Position numbers and translations under genes: made by a program. This document shows positions 45,612 through 64,000 of a DNA stretch of 64,000 nucleotides, piece after piece. The stretch comes from Podarcis liolepis (lineage: Eukaryota). The stretch lies in NCBI GenBank assembly GCA_965112155.1, contig OZ218099.1, one strand, 5' to 3'. The notes under the pieces are model-generated. The model did no database searches. It was not told the DNA's origin and worked only from the letters and a program-made list of their open reading frames with translations. Position 1 is the stretch's first letter, and each line of letters begins with the position of its first letter.

Positions 45612-46345
45612 AATTATTTAATATATACACACATACCACCTTTCCCCCCTGACAAGGATTCAAGGTGGCTTACACATTACAATAAGAACAGCTAAAAACA
45701 CAGGAAGAAAAACTATTACTTATTAAAAAGCAGTTATTTAAACAAACCTTTATAGTTTTAAAACTATCTAAACTAACTATATATTATTAGAAAGGTACAG
45801 ATAGTTACGTTGAAAAAAGTATGGCACCAGCCCTTTCATTAAAAGCAAGTCAGTTGCCCAAAGCCTGTTGTAACAAGAAAGTCTTCAGCTGCTGGCGGAA
45901 GGACAGCAAGGAAGGAGCCAGTCAAACTTCTCTAGGGAAGGAGTTTCAGAGTCCGAGAGCAGCCACCACAAGGCCCTCTCCCACATCCCAAAGGTGCCTG
46001 TGAGGGTGGCGGGACTGAGAGAAGGGCCTCCCCCAAAGATCTCAGATCCTGGGCAGGTTTGTATGAGGGATTGCGGTCTTTCAGATAGCTAGGACCCAAA
46101 CTGTATTGGGCTTTATAGGATATATAACCAACACTCTGAATTGTGCCTAGAAACAGATTGGTAGCCAGTAGAGCTGTTGTAACAAGGGGCTCTCAATCAG
46201 CCCCAGTCTACAATCTGGCTGCAGCTCTTTGAGTCAGATGAAGCTTCTGGACACTTTTCAAAGGTAGCCCCATGTAGAGTGTGTTATAGTAATTGAAACG
46301 GGATGCAACTGAGGCATGTGCCACTGTGGCCAAATCAGACACCTC
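45612..46345 (-). mobile_element. Degenerate L2 LINE 3' portion
   Basis: Translation DLATVAHASVASRFNYYNTLYMGLPLKSVQKLHLTQRAAARL is homologous to the same region of the 52497 ORF; L2-type tail near 45640-45670. Confidence 0.8.
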
Positions 46346-46597
46346 AAGGATATATATTGGGTACAGCGCATTCTGTTGTGGACCCATGAAAGTGAATGCC
46401 CTAATAAAGCTGTTAAGTCTGTCAGATGCCATGGTTGTGTTTGCAACAGTAGGCTACTCCTTTCAAATGAGCATTAAGGATGAATCTGTCTGAGAGCAGT
46501 GTTCTTCCTGTTCAATGTTGGGATGGAAGAACCTGTAATATTTTGTCAGAATGAACCAGCCTGGATGTGTCTGAATTAACAAATTGTCGTCTTGCAG

Positions 46598-46669
46598 GAC
46601 AAGGAGCCACGAGGCATCATTCCCTTGGAGAATCTGAGTATCCGTGAGGTTGAAGATTCCAAGAAGCCC
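46598..46669 (+). CDS. CYTH1: Cytohesin-1 PH exon ([24 protein letters not shown])
   Basis: gcag|GAC...CCC|gtgagt, 72 nt. Confidence 0.98.
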
Positions 46670-47618
46670 GTGAGTAAATGCCAGTGCTGGAGAGCACTTC
46701 CTAACTGGGTGGGAGCCCAGGCTGCAGATGCTGTGTGCACGTAAAAAGAAAGAAAAGGATGGTACCAAGAAAAAACTGAATTATGCAAATCATTAACTAA
46801 GCTTGCCCACTTTTGTAGAGTTGATTCTGATTCTGCCATGGGGGAAGAGGCAAAGCTATGCAAGGACACCCAGCTGGCTACAGAAAAATCCCGCGCAGGG
46901 ATAAGTCAGGCTTTTGAGACTTGACTCATCTTTTCTGCCCTAAGAGCAAAATGCTTGAGATGTTTGCAAGATGATTTTAAACCTGCACACAAAGTACTAT
47001 TTTCTGTGCTTCTGCAGTGCAGAATATGCACTGTCTTTTGGAGGTCTCCAAGGTGTTGGAGGACCCTGTTGCATCTGAGCTGTTAGTGACTACACTTGGA
47101 TAATGCTATGAGAGCTTAAATAGCCAAGATAAGGAAAAAGCCCCATTCCTGTTCACAGCTAGTTCGCTCCTTCCTCTGCTTTGTGATCAATCCAACCAAA
47201 AAGTCTTCACCCATAGTTTCCTTGTTTGGATGAAATGGGGAAACTGTGGTTAATCAGTGATATTTCTAGTGTGCTTTCTTGAGGAGCAGTGGGGCTGCAT
47301 GTGTGGGTAAAAGGCTTATTCATAATTACGTCTGATCCTCAGACAGCTTGCCAGTGATTTCTATCAAGTCGTTCTGGTGATAGCTGCAGTGGGCCAGGAA
47401 TGCTGACCCAGCTAGTGGAATTGTAGGCCCTTGATGAGAGTTGCCTTCCCAGAGTGTTGCATTGCTGTCAGGAAGTCATACCAGAGAATTGGTTACTTGC
47501 TGTCGAAAATCCTGTAATTCCTGCTCTTGAAGGATGTCTGGGAAATCCCTGGAATATGCAGAAAGTTTGAGCTGGTGTTGGCCACAAATCAGTTCTGTTT
47601 ATCCTTCTCTTCTTGCAG

Positions 47619-47773
47619 AACTGCTTCGAGCTGTATATCCCTGACAACAAGGACCAGGTGATCAAGGCTTGCAAGACGGAGGCAGACGGGCGTGTGGTGG
47701 AAGGGAACCACACTGTCTACCGCATCTCTGCACCCACCCCAGAGGAGAAGGAAGAGTGGATGAAATGCATCAA
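47619..47773 (+). CDS. CYTH1: Cytohesin-1 PH exon ([52 protein letters not shown])
   Basis: gcag|AAC...CAA|gtgagg, 155 nt. Confidence 0.98.
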
Positions 47774-48573
47774 GTGAGGAGGGGCAGGAATGATGTGAAG
47801 GGATCTGGGTAGTTTGCTTGAGCAATGTGTCATTCATTCATTCATTCATTCATTCATTTGTATGTTGCTTTTCTGCACACACACACAAATGCTCAAATTG
47901 GCTTACGACAAAAAAACAAAGCTGCATTTCAAACAAATACTACAAAACAATTTCATAATAACAAACCTCAAAAAACACATTTCAGCGCTTATAAATATAA
48001 CAAAGATTACTTAAAAATGTAGCATCCAATAGCCCAAATTAACAAGGGAGCTTCAGTTTCAGCCTTAGCCCTAGAAATATGCCTCCCATGATGTAGCTCA
48101 CAGTCCCTCTCCTGCAGCAGCTTCTTATAAGGCTTACATGGGCAAAGGGTGGAGTAGCTGTAAACACCCCTCCCATGAAAAGAATTATTTCCCATTCCTC
48201 TAGATTTCCTCACTGTGAGGGGGGGGGCGCAACTCTGTGGTTAGGTGGGCACCTGGAATTTTGGGGAGGAGATGTAAGCAGCTGAGAATGGGGCCTTTCT
48301 ATAGCTCCCTGGTTGAGATTTGCCAGTGGGTTGTGGGTTATGAGGGGGAAATAGGGCAGCCCTTAATGAAGTGCAGTCCCTCTGATCTTCCTGCTCCCTC
48401 TTCAAGCTAAATAATGCTTCCTTCCAGAAACAGTCGCTAAGGGGGTGGACTGATCCTATAATTATGTGCTAGGTGGCATCTCCAATCAGTTGGGGATTTC
48501 CCTTAACACTTTGTGGGTTTTTTTACTCTCTCTCTCTCCCCCCCCCCCCCACCTCCCACTTGTCTCTCTTCAG

Positions 48574-48652
48574 AGCTGCAATTAGCCGGGATCCATTCTA
48601 CGAGATGCTTGCTGCACGCAAGAAGAAGGTCTCCTCCACCAAGAGACATTAG
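48574..48652 (+). CDS. CYTH1: Cytohesin-1 last coding exon (AAISRDPFYEMLAARKKKVSSTKRH*)
   Basis: tcag|A..., TAG at 48650-48652. The RKKKVSSTKRH polybasic tail distinguishes CYTH1 from CYTH2/3/4. Confidence 0.98.
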
Positions 48653-50395
48653 CCACATGGCTTTGTTGAGTAGCAGTGACATTGGCAGCTGTTGCCTCTC
48701 CGTCTCCTGGCAGAGAGGAAGAGGAGCGAGACGACACAGACCCGCCTGCTCTGCATTATGACCCCGAGGGGGGACTAGCTTCAGCTTTTGCTATTCTTTT
48801 CTGGTTTGGGGGCAGGAAGAGTTGCGGGGGGTAGGCTATGTTGATGGCAACCACCAGCTCTCACTGACTTATTTAATTTGCAAGAATGCCATCTCCCTGC
48901 CAGCCCCTCAGCTGGGCAGCTTGAAGCCAAACCACGTCACTGGTAGCCCAAGTGGCAGGAAGAGAAGAATTGTTGGGGTCTTTTCTGCTACCGTGGCTGA
49001 CTTGTTCCTTGCCTGTGCCGATGGTGAGGCAGACCTATTCAAGCTGCCAGCGAGAAGTGTCGGCTGTACCAGGCTTTAGGCCTAATACTCTCCGAGACCC
49101 TGAATCAGGAATGGACCACAAACTGCCAAAGGCATAGATCAGTCTGCAGCAGAGGTTGGGGGCATGGCTCTCTAGCACTGAAGCAGAGAGATCCCTGTGG
49201 CCCTCTGCATCGCCATGTTGCTCCCTGTTCTTTGGACAGGTAAGCCCAATGGCGGCTTTTCCCCAAAGCAGTTGAGCTGTATGCTCTTTCATGTTTAATT
49301 TCCGGGGTTCTCTGTCGCAAGGAGTTTTATTAACCACGTTGAGTAATAAGCAACCAAGAATGTCAGTCCCAACAGCTGGCATGATGAATAGCAAGGCTGC
49401 CACCTCCAGGATTTCCCCTGCCCTCGTTCTAGAGGGCACTGACTAGGCTGCCTCGTATGTGAAGCAGGAATGAGGCCAGCAGAGGGCTCACTCAAGCAAC
49501 CTTGCCCAGATGAGAAGGTGGTGCTCTTGTGAGCTAGCGGCATGCATGTGGTTGTGGGTGGGCAGGTAGCTTAACCCTCATGGATGCTTTACAGGGAGGC
49601 TTTTCACCCCTTTGCCAGTGGCTGCTGGGAAACCCTCTCACCCAGCAACTGGGCACAAAAATTTATCCCTGCAGCCAGAGCTTCCTCCGTTTTTTGTTTG
49701 TTTGTTTAACATTGCAATCGGGAGCAGACAGAGCTGAAGAGAAAAGACCTGCACCATTCCCTGCTACCCTGAAGAAAGAAGCTGAAACAGGCTAGCTCTG
49801 GATTCTTTGACATAGGCTATCTTCTTACAGTTGCACTTTTCAGTAGAGGGAGTGGATGGATTGGGATGAAGGCTGTCCTGGACAGTGGGGGCACTTCTTG
49901 GCTCTGAAGCACAAGCAGATGATTGGTTGCTGGGGAACCATTGGAAGCCCAGGGTGGGTGGGGTATGAGATGATGGCTTATGCCTGGAGCACTGAGCTGG
50001 GGTAGGCCGTAAGAAGACGGTTTTCCCCGACTGTTGATTTCATTATGCGCCTTGGAAAAGCTCCAGTTTCCCCCAGCTCAGTATTAATCTATTTATCGGA
50101 GATGTACATACTCTCTGTATAGATTTTTCTCCTTTTAGATTATTTTGTATTTGTTTTTAAATAAGAGGATTGTTTTCTGTGAAACATAGCAGAATTCTAA
50201 AAAAATTGCTGTGGCACAAGGGGGGGCGGGAAGCAAGGGGGTTGCGGGAGGAAGGTGGAAGTTACTCCTGGTCAAAAAGTTTGGTTACAGTTTTTTGTGT
50301 TGAATCCTTTTCCACCCCATTGTTGGGTTTTTGTTGCCACAACCTTGTGAACTAGCACAGAGCAACTGCAGCAAATAAATGTTGATCTCACACTT
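48653..50395 (+). other. CYTH1: CYTH1 3' UTR (about 1.7 kb)
   Basis: Runs from the stop codon to the AATAAA at 50374, with U/GU-rich sequence downstream; end is approximate. Confidence 0.7.
50374..50379 (+). terminator. Polyadenylation signal AATAAA of CYTH1
   Basis: Canonical AATAAA after the stop codon, followed by CA and T/GT-rich sequence. Confidence 0.7.
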
Positions 50396-51735
50396 GGCTC
50401 TATGCCCTTCTTTGGCTGCCTCTGTCTCTGTGATCTACATTTTTGTGGTTTTCCTATTTGAGGTTAGTAGCATTACATCAAGCAATTCAGGGGCCTTGGG
50501 CCAGTCTATTTAGATCTGTGAGATTGAGGACATTTCTGTAGCCATACTGAGGAAGGGTTTCATTGTGGCTTCCCTCCCCAGCTTTAATTTTTCTTTATCT
50601 GCCAGGGGAAGCTGCTGGTAAGATTGGTTTAAGTTAAGGGACCAGAATGTAAAGCATTCATCTGGCTTCCCAGCATTAGCATTGGTTACTGATAGCTAGC
50701 TGCTATCAGTAGCCAGATGCAAAGAGGTTATAAAGCATACATTAGGAAATGAGGTTACAGTGGGTTGTATTCAAGCTCGCACTAAGGCAAACAGGGCAAC
50801 AAATTCTCCTTGCTCAGCAGAAAGTTCTTTCCCCAAACATGTTCTGGAAAATCTCCTAACCCTCTGGAGCAGAGCTTGGGGATTGTGTGTTTGGGGGTGG
50901 GGAGATGGGAGTGGAAGTCCCACTGTGCTAGCAGAAATCCTTGCACAGGTACAATTATTTAACTGGATACTGCCCAGGGTGTTGTTTTTTGAGAGGGGCT
51001 TAGAGAAGACCCTGGTGGATTTGGGATAAGACAGCAGGCTACAGTGGGGCCCCTAGTCTGTGGATGATTTGGGTTTGCATCTCCACAGTACAGTAGTGTA
51101 CACAAGCTGTGGAACCTGCAAGTTGTTATGTTTGGGGAACAGCAAGAGCGACCCACTTGTGGGTAAAACGTAAGCATGCCTACACTGAACCCGCCTCGTC
51201 ACAAACCAGCATAATGTTAAGATAGTGTTATGTCTATGCCTTTCCCCTGCATGGCTTTGCAAAATCAGTTTTTGTTTCATCAGATTCTGGATTTTAAAAG
51301 CTGTCTCAGGGGATGTGCCTAGATGGGGTTTACATGCCAGTTGACCTCTATCTATTATAAAGCTTTAAAATCTTAGTAGCACTGTATACTTACAGAATAA
51401 CAGGATTACCTCCAAAAATAGGCAACAATTGCTTTGTCTAAATAACATCCAGCAAAACTTGGGTGTTCACCTCCAGTGTGTCTCAGATTCTACAAAAGTG
51501 AATTAATCAGTCAGACAATTGCATTCAAAATACACATTAGCAGAACAAAGGTGGTGTATCTAATGCAGACTTTCTTGATCACCACAGCTCTTCCTGATAA
51601 TGGAGCAAGTGGGGTTGAACTTTAGCTAATTTCCTGCATGGGTTCTTAGTAAGAACTTCAAAATTCTGCTCGGGTCCACTATATTTCTTTTAAAGATCCC
51701 GCTCTTGCTAAAATTGGTTCAACTTTTCAAACTCA

Positions 51736-51766
51736 TGCAGCCTGAGCAGCAACCAGCAGATGGCAC
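51736..51766 (+). promoter_or_regulatory. Candidate CTCF site
   Basis: Core CCAGCAGATGGCAC (51753-51766) with upstream TGCAG (51736-51740) at U-motif-like spacing. Confidence 0.55.
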
Positions 51767-52275
51767 CAAGGTATCACATTTGGGTTTGTAGGGGAAAAGG
51801 AATGCTTATCTGCAAAAATTACCTTACCTTAAATAATCTCTTAACACTCTAGGCTGTTTTTCTTAAGGAATGTAAGTTTATAGCAGCTTTGTAAAATGGT
51901 TTTCAGTGCCCACAAAATGTAAATAAGAATCAATGTGCTATCTGTGGTGGTAGTGGGTAACCTGGTTTGATTAAGTCATAGGTGGGATGAATATGTTGGC
52001 AATGCTCATGCTTCTCATGATCTTCCACCCCTTTCTCTGATATCCAAAGCAAGGGGTGGGGGTTCACCTTGCCTAATATGTGGTCCCTTCCTGGCCTCTA
52101 TGGGTGGGAAAGAGGATTCTCCTCATTTCCTTTTATGGCAGTGGTAGCAGTAAGTGGAGGAAGTGCTCTTTCTAGATGCTCTCAGTACCACATCAGGACT
52201 GAAAGAGCAGTGGTGCTTGGGCCTTCTGGCACTGTAGTATGGGGAGGGCATCTTCCAATGCTGCTATTTCAGCTT

Positions 52276-52276
<1 letters not shown>

Positions 52277-52323
<47 letters not shown>

Positions 52324-53738
52324 TTTATTTATATCCCGCCCTCCCCAGCTGAGCCGGGCTCAGGGCGGCTAACAACAATCAAATAAACAATCAAATAATA
52401 ACACGTTCTGAAAATATTTCATTATAAAAATTAGTTAAAATCAAATTGATGGCAACCGATTAAACAAAATTCTGTGCAGGTTGCCAGAGGAGGGAGTCAG
52501 GCTGCGCCCTGACCAAAGGCCTGGCGGAACAACTCTGTCTTGCAGGCCCTGCGGAAAGATGTCAAGTCCCGCAGGGCCCTAGTCTCTTGTGACAGAGCAT
52601 TCCACCAGGTTGGAGCTGCAGCCGAGAAGGCCCTGGCTCTAGTTGAGGCCAGCCTAACCTCTCTGAGGCCTGGGACCTTGAGGGTGTTATTATTTGTAGA
52701 CCGTAGGTTTCTCTGTGGGGCATACCAGGAGAGGCGGTCCCGTAGGTACGAGGGTCCTAGGCCGTATAGGGCTTTAAAGGTTAAAACCAGCACCTTAAAC
52801 CTGATCCTGTACTCCACCGGGAGCCAGTGCAGCTGGTATAGCACCGGATGAATGTGATCCCGCAGCGAAGACCCCGTAAGGAGTCTCGCTGCGGCATTCT
52901 GCACCCGCTGGAGTTTCTGGGTCAGTCTCAAGGGCAGCCCCACGTAGAGCGAGTTACAATAATCCAGTCTGGAGGTGACCGTCGCATGGATCACAGTGGC
53001 TAGGTCAGGGCGAGAGAGATAAGGGGCCAACTGCTTAGCTTGGCGGAGATGGAAAAATGCCGCCTTTGTTATAGCTGTAATCTGCGCCTCCATAGAGAGG
53101 GAGGTATCGAAGATTACACCCAAACTCTTAACGGACGGTGCTGGCACTAATTGCACCCCCGCAAGAGATGGGAGTTGCCCCCTCAATCCCATATCGTCCC
53201 GCCCCAGCCAGAGGACCTCTGTCTTCGAAGGATTTAACTTCAACCGGCTCCCACGTAACCATCCAGCCACAGCTTCCAGACATCTGGTCAGTGTGTCTGG
53301 GGCCGAGTTAGGATGGCCATCCATCAACAGATAGAGTTGGGTGTCATCAGCATACTGATGGCAACCCAGCCCAAAACTCCGGACAAGCTGGGCGAGGGGG
53401 CGCATAAAGATGTTAAAAAGCATCGGGGAGAGAATCGCACCCTGAGGCACTCCACACACCAAGGAGTGACGCGATGACAATTCCCCCCCAAGCGCCACCC
53501 TCTGTCCCCGATCAGAGAGAAACGAGCGCAGCCATTGAAGGACTGTGCCCTGGATCCCCACGTCGGCAAGGCGGTGGTCCAGGAGTTCGTGATCGACCAT
53601 GTCAAAGGCTGCTGACAGATCTAGAAGAATCAGCAGCCCCGACCCGCCTCGATCCAGCTGCCTGCGGAGATCATCTGTTAGGGCGACCAGAGCCGTCTCG
53701 GTCCCATGACCAGCACGGAAGCCGGACTGGAATGGATC
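52277..53738 (-). mobile_element. Young 5'-truncated L2-clade LINE: RT and C-terminal domain, 3' stem-loop, (TTA)n tail
   Basis: Uninterrupted frame from DPFQSGFR (53738) through LLDLSAAFD, GVPQGAILSP, YADDTQLY and LHWLP to the stop at 52497; 3' gccgccctgagccc...ggagggcggga hairpin and triplet-repeat tail at 52277-52321. Confidence 0.93.
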
Positions 53739-54256
53739 CTTACTTTAGGGGAGTAAGGAGGAAGGGTGGATGCTTTGGGGTCATGGGGAGGTGCAGATCA
53801 AAGGAAACCAGGAACCCTCTGTCCCAGATAATTTATTTTAGCCAGAGAAGACTTTAAGGGTGCTTTGATAATTTGTCCCCTCCTTTTGCAGTGCCCCCTT
53901 AAGAACACTGGGAGTTTGCTTCCAAGCTAAGCCATGCTTTAGGCCGACATCCATGGCATCACTGTTGCTTCTGAAAATACTGTAGAATGAGTCCCTACTT
54001 GTTCTCCACTACCATTTCCACTTCTGCTCTTATCTAGTCCTCTTTCAGGGCTCCTGATTAGCATCCTTCTCCAGCTTGTGACATCATATCCCCATCACCA
54101 AACCAATTTAGTTTGTCTAACAGTGAGACCTGTACACTCTCTCCGCACAAGGTTCTTTCTCTGCCAACCTGGTCCTGTATATGGTCTTCTCAGTGCCTCT
54201 TATTCTTCCATCATGGATGATTTCAGCAGCAGGAGCCACAGTATCCCTTGTGGGTT

Positions 54257-56867
54257 TCAAACCAGCTTCCTATGGCATTCCTCTCCGTTGCAGTCTGCAC
54301 AGAAAAATGTGTCTGGGAGGATCTGTACCTTTGGGGTGAATATGTAGTTATTGTGCCCTGGGGTCCCAGGAAGGTGACCTGGAAAAGAAATTGCAATTAG
54401 TCTTACAAAGAGTGAAAAATGGGCAGCACGAAGATATCCAAGCAACAATGATTGCATTTTTCAGTAGTGGTGCCTAATGGCAGAATACTTTGTGCAGTTA
54501 TGCGCTTCTTAATGCTATATTATTTTTAGGAAGCTGTTATTTTTCATTACCGCTCCCTCAAAAGGACATTAGATTGAGCTAGTTTGAAAACAAGAAAAAT
54601 ATTTGCTGCCTTTTACTGCACCAGGTTTTGCCCTAAATTGTCTAGATATCTGATGGAAGGCCTGAAAATGTCTTAGATTGGAAATTATATGGTGATTTGA
54701 AAGTAATTCACATGCATTTCCAACCTCCCTGGTGCCAGGTTCTCCATAATTTTTAAAACTTATATATGTGGGGTTTGTTAAGCACCTCTCTAAGCCAATC
54801 CCCCAGGAAGCTGCTTTGACTTCAAAGAACAAAGGCAGAATCATTAATACCCTGATGAAAGGTCAGATATTCAGAGTCAGACATGGAAAGGGGTGGCGTG
54901 CCTTCTCCAGCTGTGTGTTACTTAGCAGAATTGAGAGGGGGAGATTGCCAGAGAAACAGGGGTGTGATGTCACCACAGAGGTTTGGGGAACAGGGTTTTC
55001 TGGGAAGGAGGAGCAAGAAGTGGGTGGAGCTCTGAAGTGTGCTGGCTGGAAAAGGCTGCACCGAGAAGCATGACTGGCTGCTGCTTTGGACCCAAGCTGC
55101 TGACAAGAGGAGCAACGAGAGATAGTCTTGGGATGTGTTGTTCTGCACCCCCACCACTGAAGGCTTCAGCTGTAAACATGTATAAAATAAACCATATTTC
55201 TTAAAGACACTAGTCTCTATTGTGCCTCATTCCAAAGGAACACAAACCCAGGAATCTCTTGCTGCTGCTTGACAGAGATTGGGGTGGCCTGTAACAATAT
55301 AATTCCTGAATGTGATACGTTTTCAGTGCCCAATGCACCCCGATTTTGCTGTGTGTGAAATAGTCTCAGTGGAGCAAGGGGTTTTACCTCCATAAAGAAG
55401 CCTTTCCCTCTCTCTGATAGTTTGTCCACTTCCACTTTATAAATTCCTGCTTCCTGCAAAGGGAAGTGCACAGCTAACTTGCTCTGCTTCTAAACTCAAG
55501 ATTATGAAGGTTTAATAGTATGAACTAGTGTGACTTGCAGCAAAATCTTGAACTATGGTATGCTCCTATTGAATGTTCCAGCCATACCTTCTTTCGGGAC
55601 ACTCTTTGCAAGTTTAAGGGGATGGGACTGGTTGGGGAGGCTCAATGGGAATAGTACTGGAAGTGAGGCTCCCCTCCTCCCAAGCAGTTGCCTCATTCTG
55701 TCTAATAATAGGACCAGCCATGGATCTGGAGAAGTAGAGCTGGGGGGGGGGGACTTATACAGAGAGACATAGTGGTTAAGAGCGGTAGATTCGTATTCTG
55801 GGGAACCGGGTTCGCTTCTCCACTCCTCCACATGCAGCTGCTGGGTGACCTTGGGCCAGTCACACTTCTCTGAAGTCTCTCAGCCCCACTCACCTCACAG
55901 AGTGTTTGTTGTGGGGGAGGAAGGGAAAGGAGAATGTTATCCACTTTGAGACTCCTTCAGGTAGTGATAAAGTGGGATATCCAATCCAAACTCCTCTTCT
56001 TCTATTGCCAAGAGCTAATTTCCATTCCTACTACTTACACCATCTCCACCATCATGCCCTAAGAGGCCCTTCCCGACACTGCCTGCAAATTTAGGAGCAC
56101 TTTTGCAGGAGGGAATCTTGCAAATGCAAACAGGAACCATCTCATGGGGCAGCCTTAGGTTTAGAGAATGCCCCTGCTGTGGATAGCAGTGCAGAGTGAA
56201 TTTGTAGCCCCAATTTTTTGCCTCACACAATTTGACATAAAACAGCTGAATAGAGATGTTCCTTCTCCCTTGACTAGGTCCTCCATCTGCCCTTCTGCTC
56301 ATCCATGACGGAGAAGCATCAATATGCTCCTCTGACCCTACTCTTCACTACTTCACAAAAAGTAACCAGTGGTTGGTTGACACTGTTAGGCTACACAGCA
56401 ATCTTAACAGCAAATGAGCATGGCACCTGCGGGAAGAAATGTATTTTGCAGGCTGACTGCTGGGTCAATCCAGTGTTTCTACAACAGAAGCGCAGCTCGG
56501 AGGAAAATGTAGCAAGTGTGAGAAAAATTAACACGTACCGCTTGTGCACAAACAGCTTTGACTTCCTCCGCAGTGTGAAGAATGCTCTAAAATCTCCAGT
56601 CCACTTTCTCAAGTGGCAACCATAGTATAAGACCCACTATCCCACCAGGGTCCATCTGAATTAACCTGAAGTCTCACCTGAGAATGGAAACAGAAAGATG
56701 TGACTTAGTAATCATTGAGGAAACTGCTTGTTTAAAAACAAGTACCTTCAGCTACTCAAAATTGCTGAAATAATCCTCCCCTGTAGAGCTCAAAGTGGTA
56801 GCAACATAACATTTGGTACAGAAGGGCTCTTGATCCGTGAAGAAGTAAATGATGCCTGTGGTATTTT
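54257..56867 (-). pseudogene. AprA/PqaA-like pseudogene remnant, copy 2 (last four exons)
   Basis: Exons on - strand: about 56780-56867 (NTTGIIYFFTDQEPFCTKCYVATTLSST, no GT donor); 56605-56677 (R*DFRLIQMDPGGIVGLILWLPLEK, TGA inside the RRDFR motif); 55388-55453 (EAGIYKVEVDKLSERGKGFFME, tttgcag|...|gtaaaa); 54257-54378 (VTFLGP / GHNNYIFTPKVQILPDTFFCADCNGEECHRKLV*, 122 nt vs 120 nt in copy 1, a 2-nt frameshift). Confidence 0.75.
55762..56003 (+). mobile_element. Squam3-type CORE SINE, nearly full length
   Basis: A box tagtggttaag, B box gggttcgct, CORE gggtgaccttgggccagtcac, L2-like tail ending in (CTT)n. Confidence 0.85.
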
Positions 56868-59800
56868 CTAGAAAGAGATAGATGGTGCAGAAAAATCACG
56901 TCCTTAAAACCACTGTATCCCCAAGACAAAAAAGGGAGAAAGCAGAAATACCAGGATGACCCACACACTTCTAAACCATGAGGAGATAAAGGTGATAAAT
57001 GCCTGGTTTATAATGTATACGGGCTACACCTATAAGATGAACAGTAACTGGTTGCCCTACTTGGTTTCTGTTATACAACCTTCAGCCAGATATCCACATT
57101 AGAACCACTCCCCAGAACAGAGGCCTTCTGCATGCTCAGTGCCAATATTTTCCTCAAGGAAAGACTTTTGCCTTTGGGAAGCACTAGATGGCAACAACAT
57201 GAACATATCTTACACAAATGGCCCTGCTTAAAGGGGCTCTGGTCACTCCTAGCACTGGGTGGGCTATGGGAGCAGAAAAAAGCTGTGGGAAAAGCAAATC
57301 CACCCCCTTCCCCCCAAAAAATATAACCTCAAAGTTCACCGGCCTAATGCAGAAAGAAACTGCAAGACATATGTGAAGGGGTGTAAAATAAATTTAAAAT
57401 GTGAGGGGTCGATTCAGCTGCAAAAGGCTGCCCACAGACATTGCCAAAAGCACTGTGGACTAGGCCGAAGCCTCCATTGCACTGAAAAATAAAGGCCCGC
57501 AGCAGGGCAGAAAGAGCAAATGCTCCCTTTGCTGGCTTAGTCAGACCTGAGCAGAGAGACAGGCTGGAGATTGTGTCTCCTCAGCTCAGCTGGCCCCAGA
57601 TATCATCTCAAGGTCAGTTATGCAAAAGTCTCTCCCACTAGCTGTCACCCAGGCATGGCAAAGCGTCTGTTCAGTTCTGCACGCTGAATGACTCTGCTGG
57701 ACAGAACAAGGATCAATAGTATACTAAAAGTGAGATAAAAATATTCTTCTTGGGAGAGGAAGGGGAAAACAATACAATTTAGAGAACCACTGGCTTGAGG
57801 GCCTGTAAAAATAATGCCTGTTTGGAAAGCCAAGGCACTTGCTTACTTAGCTCTGTTACTGGAAGTTGGTGGTTGGTGTGTCAAAAGCGAGATTCATATT
57901 TTTAATTTGGTAAAGCAACAAGTAATGTCTTACAGGGCAAGTGCTTGAGGGCATATGCTAGCACATTGTTCTCTGTGCATAGCATTAAAGCAAAGGAAAA
58001 TAATGCATTTGAAGGATATTTAAATAATTAAGCTTGAAAAGGCACAGCTTTGTAATAAAAGTAGGGCATATTTTCTGCCTAGGGAATTTCCAAAGCACAG
58101 AGTTCTCAAATAACAAATTGTAATCATCAGCGCTGAGAGCAATTTAGCTCAAAGATGTGTGTAAATCAGAGTTTTTTAATATGAATGTTTAAAAATTCCA
58201 CATATATTAAAAAGCTCTGCACTTTTTTGATCTACACACATCTTTGAACTCATTGCTCTCAGAACCAACAATTACAATTTGATGAGTCACCAGAGAGGCA
58301 CAAGAAACACAACATTTAAGAGAGCGCAGGAACAGACATCCTGATAAGGTGCATGCTGGGATTGTTTGAAGAGGGAACAGGTGAGAGCCTGGGGCTCCAA
58401 ATGTAAGAAGATGGGGAACAGGTTATGGCAGCTCCCAGTTTCTCTCTAAGGTAACTTCATGATTTGGCTTCTGTATTTTAATTCTAGTATTAAACCACTT
58501 TTGTGAAAGCAATGTCCACTTCTTCACGGACCATGAAATTTAGATGTTGTTATAAAGCACGGTTTTCAAACAAACTACTAGATTTTGACCACTAGATTTT
58601 GACGTGAGAAAGTAAACACTTTCCTCATCAGGGTGTATTAGAAGAAGAGAATCTGTCAAGATCCAGACATGGAAAAGATTCAAGGGTGTTCACATGGTAG
58701 GTGATTGACTAGTTTGGGATTTGCCTCAAAAGAGCTACACAACTTTGGAGACAAAGCAAAGTAACAGTACTTAAGTCATTAGTATCAGTTCTGCAAAGGC
58801 TATTCATGCTTCTTGAAAAAGAGTATTAGCACAAATAACTGTACTTATAAAGGTCACTGAGCATGGAAGGTGCTGAACCACATGGTCTGGGCAGCCCTTA
58901 TGCAGATGGAAATGCGCCAATTGTTCTTTAGTGGCCAAAGCATCCTCCCAGCACATGGTCAAATTGAAGCCGACAGGTACTCTGCTATATCTGAAGGATG
59001 GGTTCAGGCCTAGACTGAAGTGGAGGGAGAAAAAGGTGGCACATGCTGGCAAACAGCACCCTGCCCCTTCTGTTTTGCATTCCTGCCACTGCCTGAAGCA
59101 ATGCAGAAGCAAATGCCCTTTTGTAATGGGCTTCATTACAGGGTTTGGTCTCCACCTGAGGGGAAAGAGAGGAGGGGAACATCTTGCTAGGCCAAAGATG
59201 ATTGGGAGGGGCAGAGCTAGTCAGGTACAGGGGCACTAGGAAAAGCAGCTAGCCAGATAATGCAAACAGGAGGAACTGTTTTGAAAGTACTGTAATCTTA
59301 ACCATGCCAACTCAGAAGGTAGTACCTCTGGTGGGCTCATGCTCCTTCTGGGGTAGTTTGTCCACCTTTGGTCCCCTGTGGCTCTTAGAAGCTATCAGCA
59401 TGCAAGAGCCGCCACATCCTGGGAATGGCTCAGACAGTCTAGCTAAACCAGATGAGGGTAGCAGATTGGTCTCAAACCCTCAGTGAATTAGGGATTTCCC
59501 TGGCAGGCAAAGACAGGCTTGTGGTGGATTGAGTGGGTGAGACCAACAGGGGGTCCAATGGTGAGGAAGGCTGTTTCTGCAAGTGCTGTAGGTAGAAGTG
59601 AGGGGCAGATGGGGCTCATCAACCTGGGAAGGTAGCCCATCTAGCAGAAGGAACAGTCTGACCCTAAACCTCCATTGCCTTGCAGAGCATCTTTGGGAAA
59701 AGAAAAGGGTAAGGAGTAAACCCTACATAAATCCAGAGTGGAGTCCCTAAGACAGTTGTATGGTGCCTTGTTTGCCTCTTTCCAGCAACTCCAACATCCA

Positions 59801-60444
59801 AGCTGGTAACAAATGTATTGCTCTTCTTTCCTTTGAACAACATCAACAAGGCTGAGAGTCTTGTCATCTGCGCAGCCCAGAACCTCCATACACACTGCCC
59901 AGGCTTGTGCCCTGAGAAGATCACATCGATCCTGCTAGTGCAGCAGTTTGACTTCGCCCCTGAAGGAGCACCCCATTGTCTTTCAAAACAGACGGATGCC
60001 AACAACTCCCAGATAAACTGAGTTAGTAAGAGAGGTGTATTGTCTTGCATGGGTACAGTGTATATAATCTCAATGCAAGGCATTGTGAACTGTTGAAATC
60101 TGCTGCTTGCATGTGTGTGCATGCAAACAGACAAAATTGTATAAAATTGTCAACCAGGCATAGATGATAAATTTTGCTGTCTGTCTGATAAGTTTTCCAT
60201 GAGTCCTAGCAGGAGATAGCAGCAGTAGGAATAGCAGCCAGCAAGGTGTTATCTGTCCTGAATTGTCTAACATTCAGCAACATCCACGAGTTCTGGAGTT
60301 ATGAGAGACGGAGAAAGTCCTGTCCTGTTCAGGTCTGATGCTGAATTCTGCAGGGAAAGCAAGCCTGGAAGCTAGCTCATGGATAGCACTAAGCGAATGA
60401 CTTGTTTCTCCAGGCTCCACCCACTTGTAGAGAACTCCAGAGCC

Positions 60445-60698
60445 TTATAAGCCCTTGCGGTGTTGGAGGGTTTCAGGAGTCATGACACCAATTTCCTTCC
60501 GTTGTGTAGCACCACTCAGGGCCCTGTATGATTCAGCAAGGCTGTGCAGCAATAGGGCTGCAGAATTATTGCCTTTCAGTTCCTCCCCTGTTCTTCTCAG
60601 CTGCTCCACGAATTCCAGCATGGAATTCACATGCTCCCGCATCTGCTGCCCCTTTGGAGCCTCATCCCGTGCAGTTTGAGTAGCGGCAGCAGCTTAGT
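60445..60698 (-). mobile_element. Degenerate Ty1/Copia LTR-retrotransposon gag fragment
   Basis: TKLLPLLKLHGMRLQ / GQQMREHVNSMLEFVEQLRRTGEELKGNNSAALLLHSLAESYRAL, joined by a frameshift. Resembles the Copia gag pattern KL..MRL.EG..M..HI..M...VEQL...GE.......A.LLL.SLP.SY. Confidence 0.65.
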
Positions 60699-61330
60699 GC
60701 CAAATTCAGAAGTGCAGGGTCCTTTTATGATAGTCACAGCTGTGTCCCTCTCACAGCCACACCATCTTCTAAGATTATGTAGTCAAAATGAGCTTTCAGT
60801 CTCTTTGCTTGGAATTCTGTTTAGCACAAACACACTGGGCAGCTGACCTGTATAAATGCCTTTGCCATAATTAAGAGCAGCAGCAGAGGGCAGTGGTGCT
60901 CCTATTTCATTTTCATTGGCCTTTACAAGAGAACTCCCTGGTGGTTTGTACTTCAGTCACTGCAACTGCCTGTATGAAGGACAGTCTGTAGATCCACTTT
61001 ACTAACAAACCTAATCTGTTCAACTGAATGACATATATTCACAACACTGATAGTACTGTGGTAGGTATTACTCCTTTTGTTATGATAGGCTTATGACCCA
61101 ACCTGCTACACACCCTAAGAACAGACACCCATTCCCCATACAGTAGCTATAGGAGGATAGTGGAGCAAGTGGCGGTTCACTTCAAAACACAAGAAAATCT
61201 CACCCAGTGCAAGATGGTAAGAATGCCAGAAACAACCTTTATTTGTTAACAGGGAATGAACAGCTAGAAATCATCAGGCCATGAAAGCCACAGCAGGTGG
61301 GCTCACTTCTGCCACACAAAATATAGTCAC

Positions 61331-61336
61331 TTTATT
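61331..61336 (-). terminator. Candidate polyA signal (AATAAA on - strand) for AprA-like copy 1
   Basis: tttatt on the + strand about 650 nt past the stop; a second one at 61238-61243. Confidence 0.4.
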
Positions 61337-61980
61337 GTTACCCCCATTTTGCAGAAGGGACTCGAAAACGAAGAGATAATAGCTAGCCAAAGAAGACACC
61401 CTCTTCCGTCTGTGACTCACGTGCAATTTGAACTCAGTCATTTTACATGATTTACAATCCAGCTATAATCAATTACTTGGATTAGAGGCTATTTAATCCC
61501 ATCAAAGTCTATGAGGCTAAACTATTTTAAAACCGGGTTAAGGAATTGTGCATCAAATGCTCAAATACTTGTACAGAGTTTCAGTGAAGACCTATAGAGC
61601 ATAGTGCTTCTCTTTCTTTTGATCCTGAGATCTGAGGAATACAAAGGCACTTTCCTTTGCTGCATTAATCGTTCATAATTTTATATAGCCAGGCCCTCCC
61701 TCTGTCTCATGCCCAATATGCTTCATCCACCCACCAGACCCATTTCCCACAACCCTCCTTTAGGGCTCCTGTTCCTGACTGACATCTTCACCTACCTACC
61801 CCACGACCCCACACCCCTCTCCCATTTCATGTTAGTTGAAGTTGAACCTGTGCATTCTCTATGCAGTATTATTTCTCTGCCCAACCCACCCTGACTCCTC
61901 TGCGTGGTTTTCTGAGCACCTCTCGTGTTTACACTCATGGATGTCTTCAGCAGCAGGAGCTATAGCATCCTTGGTGAGTG

Positions 61981-62100
61981 TCATACCACCTTCCCCTTGC
62001 ATTCCTTTCCGTGGCAGGCTGGACATGGAAAAGTGTCTGGAATGATGTGAACCTCAGAACTTAACACAAAATCAATGGTCCCGGGTCCTGGGAAGGTGGC
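61981..62100 (-). CDS. Terminal coding exon of an AprA/PqaA (PhoPQ-related)-like gene, copy 1 (ATFPGPGTIDFVLSSEVHIIPDTFPCPACHGKECKGKVV*); rest of gene off-window
   Basis: Acceptor tttcttttccag|GCC, 39 codons + TGA. The FPGP...I(I/L)PDTFP-x2-C-x-G-x2-C-x-GK-x-V* ending matches the C-terminus I recall for autocrine proliferation repressor A-like proteins. Confidence 0.72.
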   Translation of the reverse strand, partial: ATFPGPGTIDFVLSSEVHIIPDTFPCPACHGKECKGKVV

Positions 62101-62374
62101 CTGGAAAAGAAATTGCAGTTCTGCTCAATATCTCGCCTTGCAAATCTAATAGAACGGAGCCTACATTGGTAGTGCAAAGCACAGGGATAGCTAAAAAATA
62201 ATTGTTGTGCCTTACAGCATATTGTAGCTTATGGAAGAATACTTCCTGCCTATTCAGCACAACAGCTTTCTATCACTGGATTTCAATTAGTACATGAAAG
62301 TAGAGCTTTCAGGCATAGTTGCTTTATTGTTTTTGGAAGGACACAGTGAGTGAGCTAGACTGAAAGGTAAGCTA

Positions 62375-62376
<2 letters not shown>

Positions 62377-62429
<53 letters not shown>

Positions 62430-62446
62430 TGTTTGTTTGTTTGTTT
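62377..62446. repeat. (TAA)n then (TTTG)n simple repeat
   Basis: Read directly; probably a LINE/SINE tail. Confidence 0.9.
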
Positions 62447-64000
62447 ATACCCCGCCCATTTGGGTAATACCAGTTTTTGCCTTGAGTCTTTTAGATTATT
62501 GGTTACAAAGCCAATATTCCCTCATTAAACAGAAGCAAGTAGTTCACATGATGCAATATCCCCCCAAATTGTTTTAACAGCTAGGGTTGTGCAACCACTG
62601 CATCCAAATCCCAAGATGAGGCGGGATCAAAGTAGGGTCCCTCCAAGGCTCAGCTCTGCCCCCAAAGCGATCTGAGCCGAAGATCCCCCTGCTCTGGAGA
62701 CATTCAGTTACAAAGCAAAGGTGATCTATGCCAAGTAACCTGTCTCCAAAATGACTGGAAAAATGTAAACGTCCTCAAATAAGGGAAACATGATGATGGA
62801 GTCAATGGGAGTAGTAGAACTGGTGTTTGCTCCCCGTAGCCTCAAACCCAGACGTAGAATATTATCCTACATCCCCACAATCCTAGTATCTTTGTCCCAG
62901 TGCCTTTCCCCCTCACTCTATGGCTAGTACTATGGATGGCACAAGGAGTTTGCTGTGGTATTTTGATTCAGCTTGTCTCTTAACCCAACATTTCTACCTA
63001 TTTGCTTTTTTCATCCTTCTCTATCTACACACACATAGAGCTTGTTGTCACTTTTAGTCTCCAGTTATAATAGCCACTAAGGCAGTTTTACTTCCTTCCT
63101 CTCCCAAATGTGGCTATGGTGTTTTGAACTTTATTTACACTTGTATCATCTCTCAATGAGTCATAGATCCTTCATAATCAAACTACGTGTTTGTTTTCTA
63201 TTCTTTTCCATCCTTCCCAATCCAACATTATATATACATATATCTATGCACACAAGCATATACACATATTGTGTGTTGTCCCCTGGCCATAGTGTTTTCT
63301 GAGATAGGTTTTCAAAATCTCTTTCAAATAAGTTATGACTGTTCTGGATTATTATTATTATTAGAAAAGTCACACAACCTATGTGTCTCAAATTTGGCAG
63401 GGTTCATCCTATTTTTGGAGAGGTGGGCCTTCTATGTCAGCAGGTGTTATGCACCTATGTAACTAATCCAAAATTTGTGAATATCTTGCTTTCCCAATGC
63501 AAGTCAATGGGAGGTCTGAAGCTGCAGCTTTGGATTTGGGGTGCAATACCACCCCCTTCCTGTAGCAATTCACACTGAATAGGAGACAGTCAGAAGTGAA
63601 GCAGCTTGGGTTGCTTCACAGAGCCCTAAGAAATATCATGGCGTGATTACAGCAGCCAATGAATTAATGCCTGGACTGCAACATGGAACAGCAATTTCCA
63701 GATCATAGTTCCTACCTGTCAACCACTCTGATTTAGGAGTGCTTTATTCAAGCCATAATTTGCCCAAAACACGTTTTATGGAAAACTTAAACCTTGTAGC
63801 CTTTATTTTTAGGTGTTGATGAAGATTTGACACTGGAATAGGATAGACACTCCAGAGCCATTGTGTGTTCTGAGAAACGTAGTCTAACAACCTATCTTGA
63901 TTTCTTCTGGCTTAGCATCTCAGTGCTAATGCCAATACATGACCCTCCTAAAGGTGCCTGTTATTTCCAGGGAGACTGATTTGGGTGAATCTCTATCAGT

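Follow-up and report, generated by a model that had tools for sequence, protein, structure and literature searches.

A candidate last coding exon and a decayed tandem copy of the AprA-like family beside CYTH1 in the lizard Podarcis liolepis

Does the sequence beside the CYTH1 gene of the lizard Podarcis liolepis carry a living pair of genes for relatives of the Dictyostelium protein AprA? We analyzed a stretch of 64,000 nucleotides (nt; GenBank assembly GCA_965112155.1, contig OZ218099.1), hereafter the window, in which two homologous minus-strand segments, one ending at position 61981 (copy 1) and one ending at position 54257 (copy 2), resemble terminal exons. A first-pass annotation, made from the letters alone, had read them as a tandemly duplicated pair of genes of the PhoPQ-related family (Pfam PF10142), lying tail-to-tail with CYTH1, and had proposed an undescribed system encoding a probably secreted hydrolase-fold protein that mammals lack. 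We conclude that the locus very probably holds the last exon of one paralog, which we call lineage E, together with a pseudogene, at the end of a cluster of AprA-like genes by CYTH1. In this arrangement, the window would be the CYTH1-proximal end of a minus-strand lizard cluster of AprA-like (PF10142, PhoPQ_related) genes, copy 1 (62100-61981) would be the last coding exon of lineage E, and copy 2 (58777-54257), the product of an old tandem duplication, would have decayed in situ into an unprocessed pseudogene.

When the window was compared with itself by blastn, 61754-62120 matched 54039-54398 with 68% identity over 373 aligned nt, and the claim of a local duplication was thus borne out. Both open reading frames (ORFs) of the claimed terminal exons were present on the minus strand with the endings previously given. 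Further, the common acceptor and 3' flank were confirmed: the acceptor contexts shared 19 of 20 nt, and the identity between the copies was 69% in the last exon, 80% in the first 50 nt past the stop and 53-57% farther out. The differences at codon positions 1, 2 and 3 numbered 13, 6 and 13, the amino acid was altered in 19 of 33 codons, and three frames scored nearly equally in tblastx. There was no clear coding pattern in the substitutions between the copies. Only these two copies were present in the window, without a third, and 62120-64000 showed no further likeness to 46000-61700 by blastn. Note that (TAA)n microsatellites at 62373-62429 and 52277-52341 produced spurious blastn and tblastx matches between both regions.

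We searched a profile of both last-exon peptides against 1.84 billion cluster representatives. The profile matched 55 proteins at E<=1e-3, mostly at their extreme C-terminus, and the top hits came from Podarcis muralis, Zootoca vivipara and Heteronotia binoei, whose RefSeq entries bear the name 'autocrine proliferation repressor protein A-like'. PF10142 (PhoPQ_related) was found in 10 of 10 hits scanned, in seven of which (425-514 amino acids, aa) the E value was 1e-73 to 1e-105. Further, when a hidden Markov model (HMM) of the family was run over all six frames of the window, with searches done exon by exon, each of the five best hits fell on the minus strand, and together they followed the gene order (61984-62124, 54260-54460, 56755-56895, 58712-58825 and 55220-55489). 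Homology to carriers of PF10142, in the right place and order, was therefore seen in the profile search, in the HMM matches over four to five window exons, and in an annotated Zootoca orthologue that agrees with copy 1 at 90%. The profile hits, their PF10142 domains and the RefSeq names together upheld the AprA/PqaA-like assignment. The nearly equal conservation of three reading frames might instead suggest that neither segment is a gene exon and that they belong to a dispersed repeat or form an ORF by chance. However, a repeat present only twice in 64 kb would have to match database proteins mostly exactly at their C-terminal end, lie in order with more exons of the same family and resemble the annotated Zootoca protein, and we give this explanation practically no credence.

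The sequence features of copy 1 were as follows.

61981 to 62100, minus strand: candidate last coding exon of copy 1; 39 codons plus TGA at 61983-61981, phase 0 entry; family HMM E 1e-15, model positions 448-490
62101 to 62120, minus strand: polypyrimidine tract and AG acceptor of copy 1, shared with the copy 2 acceptor at 19 of 20 nt
61890 to 61980, minus strand: post-stop sequence of copy 1, coding in the Zootoca RefSeq model; ends at a donor-like CAGG/GTGGGT, 61890/61889

The phase-0 entry of the exon, at ATFPGP, coincides exactly with the family's boundary GFFIE/VTFPGP (the slash marks the exon junction). The start 'ATFPGP' is common to many members, and this boundary is also where many fragmentary hits from the database begin. 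Copy 1 has the family tail I-I-P-D/N-T-F-P-x-x-D/E-C-x-G-x-x-C-x-G-x-L-V, the protein end and the phase-0 (A/V)TFPGP exon, with Ala in place of the acidic residue, where the Zootoca orthologue has Gly. This orthologue (XP_034954850.1, P0185, 574 aa) has the same residue at 35 of the 39 positions, and in tblastn it matched 62112-61888 with 80% identity over 75 aa, with sense codons at both stops of the window. The tblastn match extends four residues into the polypyrimidine tract (62101-62112, minus strand), in which 'FLFQ' mimics 'FFIE', slightly inflating the identities of copy 1. On these sequence comparisons, we assign copy 1 as the putative last coding exon of the lacertid AprA-like paralog lineage E, and the remainder of the gene would lie beyond position 64000.

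Several results weigh against this reading. First, hmmscan detected no PF10142 in the window's own four exon peptides, and none in all 108 stop-free minus-strand segments of >=30 aa in 53900-64000; apart from a fragment of a copia-type gag and one weak LIM-like match, these scans gave no Pfam hit. The blank is partly expected because most of what survives in the exons is located C-terminally of the Pfam domain, which covers residues 23-404 in a protein of 487 aa, and the family link therefore rests on the homologues and the family-specific HMM. A search with the exon peptides had been suggested as a check of the family assignment: the blank in the direct Pfam comparison at first seemed to refute it, and was overturned by the profile search, which matched AprA-like/PF10142 proteins. 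Second, no penultimate exon of copy 1 was found in 62101-64000 using the family HMM, tblastn with the Zootoca protein or a donor-anchored motif scan; therefore, the intron of copy 1 is longer than 1.9 kb or the exon was lost. Third, the lineage E models of Podarcis and Lacerta have 292-326 aa, or 428 aa in P. lilfordi, and all are without the copy 1 exon. Since this exon is absent from the lineage E models of Podarcis in RefSeq, the gene could be damaged in wall lizards.

The weak LIM-like match (LIM_FHL2-3_N, E 0.016) fell on the GIIYFFTDQEPFCTKCY exon. A LIM gene was considered for it, and was dropped once the exon was aligned to AprA-like proteins.

We therefore asked whether copy 1 is also dead, with lineage E pseudogenised or truncated in wall lizards and an intact-looking last exon merely surviving. 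The RefSeq models of P. muralis and P. raffonei end at 303-326 aa and that of P. lilfordi is without the last two exons, although truncation of gene models is often an annotation artefact, and the lineage E proteins are short-branched and retain the leader as well as each of the three triad motifs (Ser, Asp and His). Chance can keep an ORF of 39 codons open, yet this exon agrees with Zootoca at nine residues in ten, compared with approximately 77% in the translated flank, and it retains a strong acceptor, the phase 0 entry and all three tail cysteines. The absence of a penultimate exon within 1.9 kb upstream, where the matching intron in copy 2 spans 1.0 kb, also speaks for a dead copy 1. We consider the death of copy 1 unlikely, if a serious concern, and think it somewhat more likely than not that a working lineage E gene persists in this lizard.

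In contrast to copy 1, copy 2 could be followed over further exons. Exactly four exons were recovered by tblastn with squamate proteins and by the family HMM in six frames, and every one of them is on the minus strand, in the order of the gene; splice sites were checked in three of the four.

58679 to 58777, minus strand: relic exon of copy 2, family residues ~109-146 (ALLRQIPNQP); tblastn E 0.003-0.015 with several lacertid proteins; HMM model positions 111-132
56746 to 56867, minus strand: exon of copy 2, NTTGIIYFFTDQEPFCTKCY...GEDYFSNFE-stop-LK; 122 nt, AG acceptor and GT donor kept; HMM E 1.7e-7
55388 to 55453, minus strand: penultimate exon of copy 2, EAGIYKVEVDKLSERGKGFFME; 66 nt, both ends in phase 0, splice sites intact
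54257 to 54378, minus strand: last exon of copy 2 with a net +2 nt frameshift; HMM E 6e-11, tail only, model positions 457-490
54039 to 54256, minus strand: 3' flank of copy 2, homologous to the post-stop sequence of copy 1 (blastn, alignment)

The relic exon, on which several lacertid queries all converged at one site in tblastn, reads SCVALLRQIPN-stop-SITY, and an in-frame TAG at 58711-58709 replaces the Q codon of QIPNQP. The next exon, with 65.6% identity to Anolis sagrei (tblastn E 9.5e-9), carries an in-frame TAG at 56754-56752. In the family, RRDFR and GIIYFF share this exon; the (R/K/A)RDFR motif is conserved from bacteria to squamates, and copy 2 reads GEDYF at its position, followed by the TAG. 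The penultimate exon was matched by tblastn with Sceloporus and Phrynosoma (E 0.002) and A. sagrei (E 0.038). Among the three additional exons proposed in the first-pass annotation, GIIYFFTDQEP (56867-56746) and GIYK...GFFME (55453-55388) were thus family exons in order, and 'RDFR' was spurious: the letters at 55869-55880 are a chance match in apparently repeat-like sequence, weakly similar to another site in the window.

Alignment of both copies and split-frame tblastn with a family protein (P0038) revealed the frameshift in the last exon of copy 2. The spacing from LGP to I-x-P is 53 nt in copy 2, compared with 51 nt in copy 1 and in the family; the two additional bases are right after GGACCC. 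Because the penultimate exon ends in phase 0, this insertion shifts the conserved tail into another frame, and the frame previously given for copy 2 is unreachable from the phase-0 splice of the family. In phase 0, the exon reads VTFLGPQGT...CGSCC with a stop at 54225-54223, and the family tail ILPDTFFCADCNGEECHRKLV, with its stop, lies in a different frame; the sequence of the animal tail is present and out of frame with the phase-0 entry. The ...CGSCC frame, which had the best tblastx score, was considered as the true coding frame of copy 2 and rejected, as the family tail is in the frame of the first-pass annotation and copy 1 has a stop in the ...CGSCC frame.

No exon for the catalytic core of copy 2 (residues ~147-370, including GxSKRGW) was detectable by tblastn or the family HMM, and neither the nucleophile motif GxSKRGW nor the Asp of GDEFF nor the His of PNxxH was found in copy 2. 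The exons of copy 1 for these motifs and for RRDFR would be beyond the end of the window. The exons of copy 2 were 45-66% identical to other squamate AprA-like models, with conflicting affinities: the GIIYFF exon was nearest to Anolis sagrei (66%), and the tail to a Lacerta agilis paralog (~70%, hand count). From the two TAG stops, the 2-nt frameshift, the lost RRDFR and the missing core, we concluded that copy 2 is an unprocessed pseudogene, long dead.

The claim of a live gene pair therefore did not stand. A functional tandem pair would agree with the last-exon ORFs, both open in the frame of the first-pass annotation, and with the kept splice sites of copy 2. Both TAG codons (56754-56752 and 58711-58709), the +2 nt shift, the GEDYF in place of a motif conserved from bacteria to lizards, and the lack of any exon found for residues 147-370 nevertheless make it highly improbable that both copies are alive. 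For annotation, 58777-54257 should be flagged as a pseudogene and not as a gene, and the wall-lizard models of lineage E appear to be without their true last coding exon, 62100-61981.

We next consider the family in squamates. AprA-like models exist in RefSeq for Podarcis, Zootoca, Lacerta, Anolis, Sceloporus, snakes and geckos; automatic annotation has reached 16 squamate species, and several paralogs are present in Podarcis. The homologues of the Zootoca protein included those of Podarcis muralis, P. lilfordi, Lacerta agilis, Anolis sagrei, Sceloporus, Phrynosoma, Rhineura, Lerista, four snakes and three geckos. Since models named 'autocrine proliferation repressor protein A-like' are in RefSeq for many squamates, the proposal of an undescribed system failed. 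The locus is not a new system: the family is annotated in databases, and what the window contributes is a last coding exon that had been missing for one paralog, together with the adjacent pseudogene. In the literature searched, there was no paper on a squamate member, which agrees with the statement that no characterised vertebrate member is known. To our knowledge, the AprA family is well studied only in Dictyostelium, nobody has examined it in squamates, and its function has been tested in no animal.

Lineage E is a fifth lacertid lineage, separate from paralogs A, B, C and x. Its members are Zootoca XP_034954850.1, P. muralis XP_028576937.1 and XP_077776260.1, P. raffonei XP_053236140.1, P. 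lilfordi CAI5765836.1 and L. agilis XP_032991901.1. It groups with a Rhineura gene (Shimodaira-Hasegawa-like approximate likelihood ratio test, SH-aLRT, 100), to which it would be orthologous. The lineage E proteins have a full PF10142 domain (E ~1e-94; Zootoca 6e-94), a hydrophobic leader, GGSKRGW, GDEFF and PNNDH. The newest P. muralis models (XP_077776260, XP_077776263, XP_077776273 and XP_077776279) have closely spaced accessions and lie on one 126.8-Mb record. This close spacing suggests a single gene cluster.

Among the best 120 PF10142 homologues, the only vertebrates were squamates, in line with the claim that mammals lack the gene; no non-squamate vertebrate was present in this set. 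Next after squamates came molluscs and a brittle star (39-42% identity), and then a sponge, Seison, Dictyostelium and bacteria. This pattern among the best 120 points to a possible loss in all other sampled vertebrate lineages. In a maximum likelihood tree (quick search), squamates formed one clade (SH-aLRT 100) beside invertebrate animals, and bacteria were apart (SH-aLRT 100). The tree topology fits vertical descent with loss in other vertebrates, as would not be expected of a recent bacterial transfer. Among vertebrates, the AprA family thus appears to persist in squamates alone, most of whose lineages have an intact catalytic triad. The question raised by this locus concerns the whole family. 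A broader picture, in which squamates are the sole vertebrates keeping an ancient AprA/PF10142 secreted hydrolase, at least five lacertid lineages are clustered from CYTH1 onward, and some gecko copies have become proteins without catalytic function, seems to us quite doubtful as a whole. If it were true, lineage E could be a working secreted enzyme or a chemorepellent-type signal without a mammalian or avian counterpart.

We compared copies 1 and 2 with known members of the family. The Zootoca protein XP_034954850.1 is the orthologue of copy 1 and has the same gag-derived segment downstream; in contrast to the window, it runs past both stops, and the models from Podarcis and Lacerta stop short of this exon. 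Other squamate models (lacertid paralogs A, B, C and x, Anolis sagrei, Sceloporus, Rhineura, snakes and geckos) have the same exon boundary GFFIE/VTFPGP and the same tail. They are intact, with 475-505 aa, unlike the broken, core-less copy 2, and have CxDC or CxEC in the tail where the lineage of copy 1 has CPAC or CLGC.

The AprA of Dictyostelium discoideum belongs to the same Pfam family, PF10142. As a secreted protein, it works through the G protein-coupled receptor GrlH to repel cells and to repress proliferation, and it is described as similar to DPPIV in structure and function (PMC5821085, PMC8886819). A homologue from Dictyostelium shows 34% identity to the Zootoca protein, with which it has GLSKRGW, GDEFF, PNTNH and KRDFR in common. 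However, the C-terminal tail of Dictyostelium AprA differs (PFPPCGDACKVGKSNIE), and signalling of the GrlH type cannot be assumed in lizards. The bacterial PhoPQ-activated pathogenicity-related proteins (PqaA family) have the same Pfam domain, 28-35% identity to the Zootoca protein, GxSKRGW and (A)RDFR, but form a separate clade (SH-aLRT 100) without the cysteine tail of the animal type.

Squamate orthologues begin with a hydrophobic leader, MYAAVALLLLTTCLPSGW, resembling a signal peptide. The AlphaFold2 model of Podarcis paralog A (predicted local distance difference test 93, predicted template modelling score 0.92) has an alpha/beta-hydrolase body and an all-beta domain at residues 363-467, and the solved folds nearest to it were alpha/beta-hydrolases (Foldseek E 1e-11 to 5e-9). 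These nearest folds were CE7 acetyl xylan esterases and cephalosporin C deacetylase (6agq, 1vlq, 1ods), and also prolyl-oligopeptidase-type domains (FAP 1z68, acylaminoacyl peptidase 4hxg). They differ from the family in that sequence identity is 11-15% and approximately a quarter of the paralog A model is unaligned; no PF10142 structure was among the Foldseek matches listed. The reading of a secreted hydrolase fold was thus supported, at the level of the family only, by the hydrophobic leader, the Ser, Asp and His motifs and the predicted fold. Intact squamate members would consist of a leader, an alpha/beta-hydrolase domain bearing a triad (the Ser of GxSKRGW, the Asp of GDEFF and the His of PNxxH), and an all-beta C-terminal domain with the cysteine-bearing tail IIPDTFPCxDCxGxxCxGxLV. 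Judging from the model, the exons in the window would encode only the C-terminal all-beta domain and the tail. By analogy, the squamate proteins may act as secreted hydrolases, as AprA-like signals, or both.

The Ser, Asp and His motifs were retained in most squamate proteins. In gecko proteins (P0076, P0006 and P0086), GxSKRGW is changed to GVYSSGW or GVVMNGW, and the His to Q, Y or F. The His was replaced in all three aligned gecko proteins, and both Heteronotia copies were also without the Ser. By their sequences, the gecko paralogs may be pseudoenzymes, whereas the triad is kept in lacertid, iguanian, amphisbaenian and snake proteins.

Downstream of copy 1, the window has a segment that is an exon in the Zootoca model.

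60516 to 60692, minus strand: copia-type gag-derived segment (Retrotran_gag_2 E 6.9e-8); downstream exon in the Zootoca model; AG acceptor at 60694-60693

The copia-type gag fragment as a whole spans 60448-60693 on the minus strand. Residues 530-574 of XP_034954850.1 matched 60669-60519 with 79-93% identity. The Zootoca model has sense codons at the TGA and the second stop of the window and then continues for 84 more residues into the gag-derived exon. Because the gag segment is also coding in XP_034954850.1, the insertion is older than the split of Zootoca and Podarcis. The Zootoca model probably reads through into sequence that is untranslated region (UTR) in this lizard. In the wall lizard, the donor-like site at 61890/61889 and the AG at 60694-60693 could bound an intron of the 3' UTR, and the gag segment would be no more than an exon of the 3' UTR.

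A search of the window with Rfam gave no hits. On the other side of copy 2, a plus-strand motif scan located the end of CYTH1.

48581 to 48652, plus strand: coding end of CYTH1 (...ISRDPFYEMLAARKKKVSSTKRH, then stop)

Since CYTH1 is on the plus strand with its coding end at ~48652, it is tail-to-tail with the minus-strand AprA-like gene, as claimed. Between the end of CYTH1 and the pseudogene, an ORF fragment of a reverse transcriptase of the long interspersed nuclear element (LINE) type is present at 52500-53600 on the minus strand (367 aa, RVT_1 E 5.6e-20).

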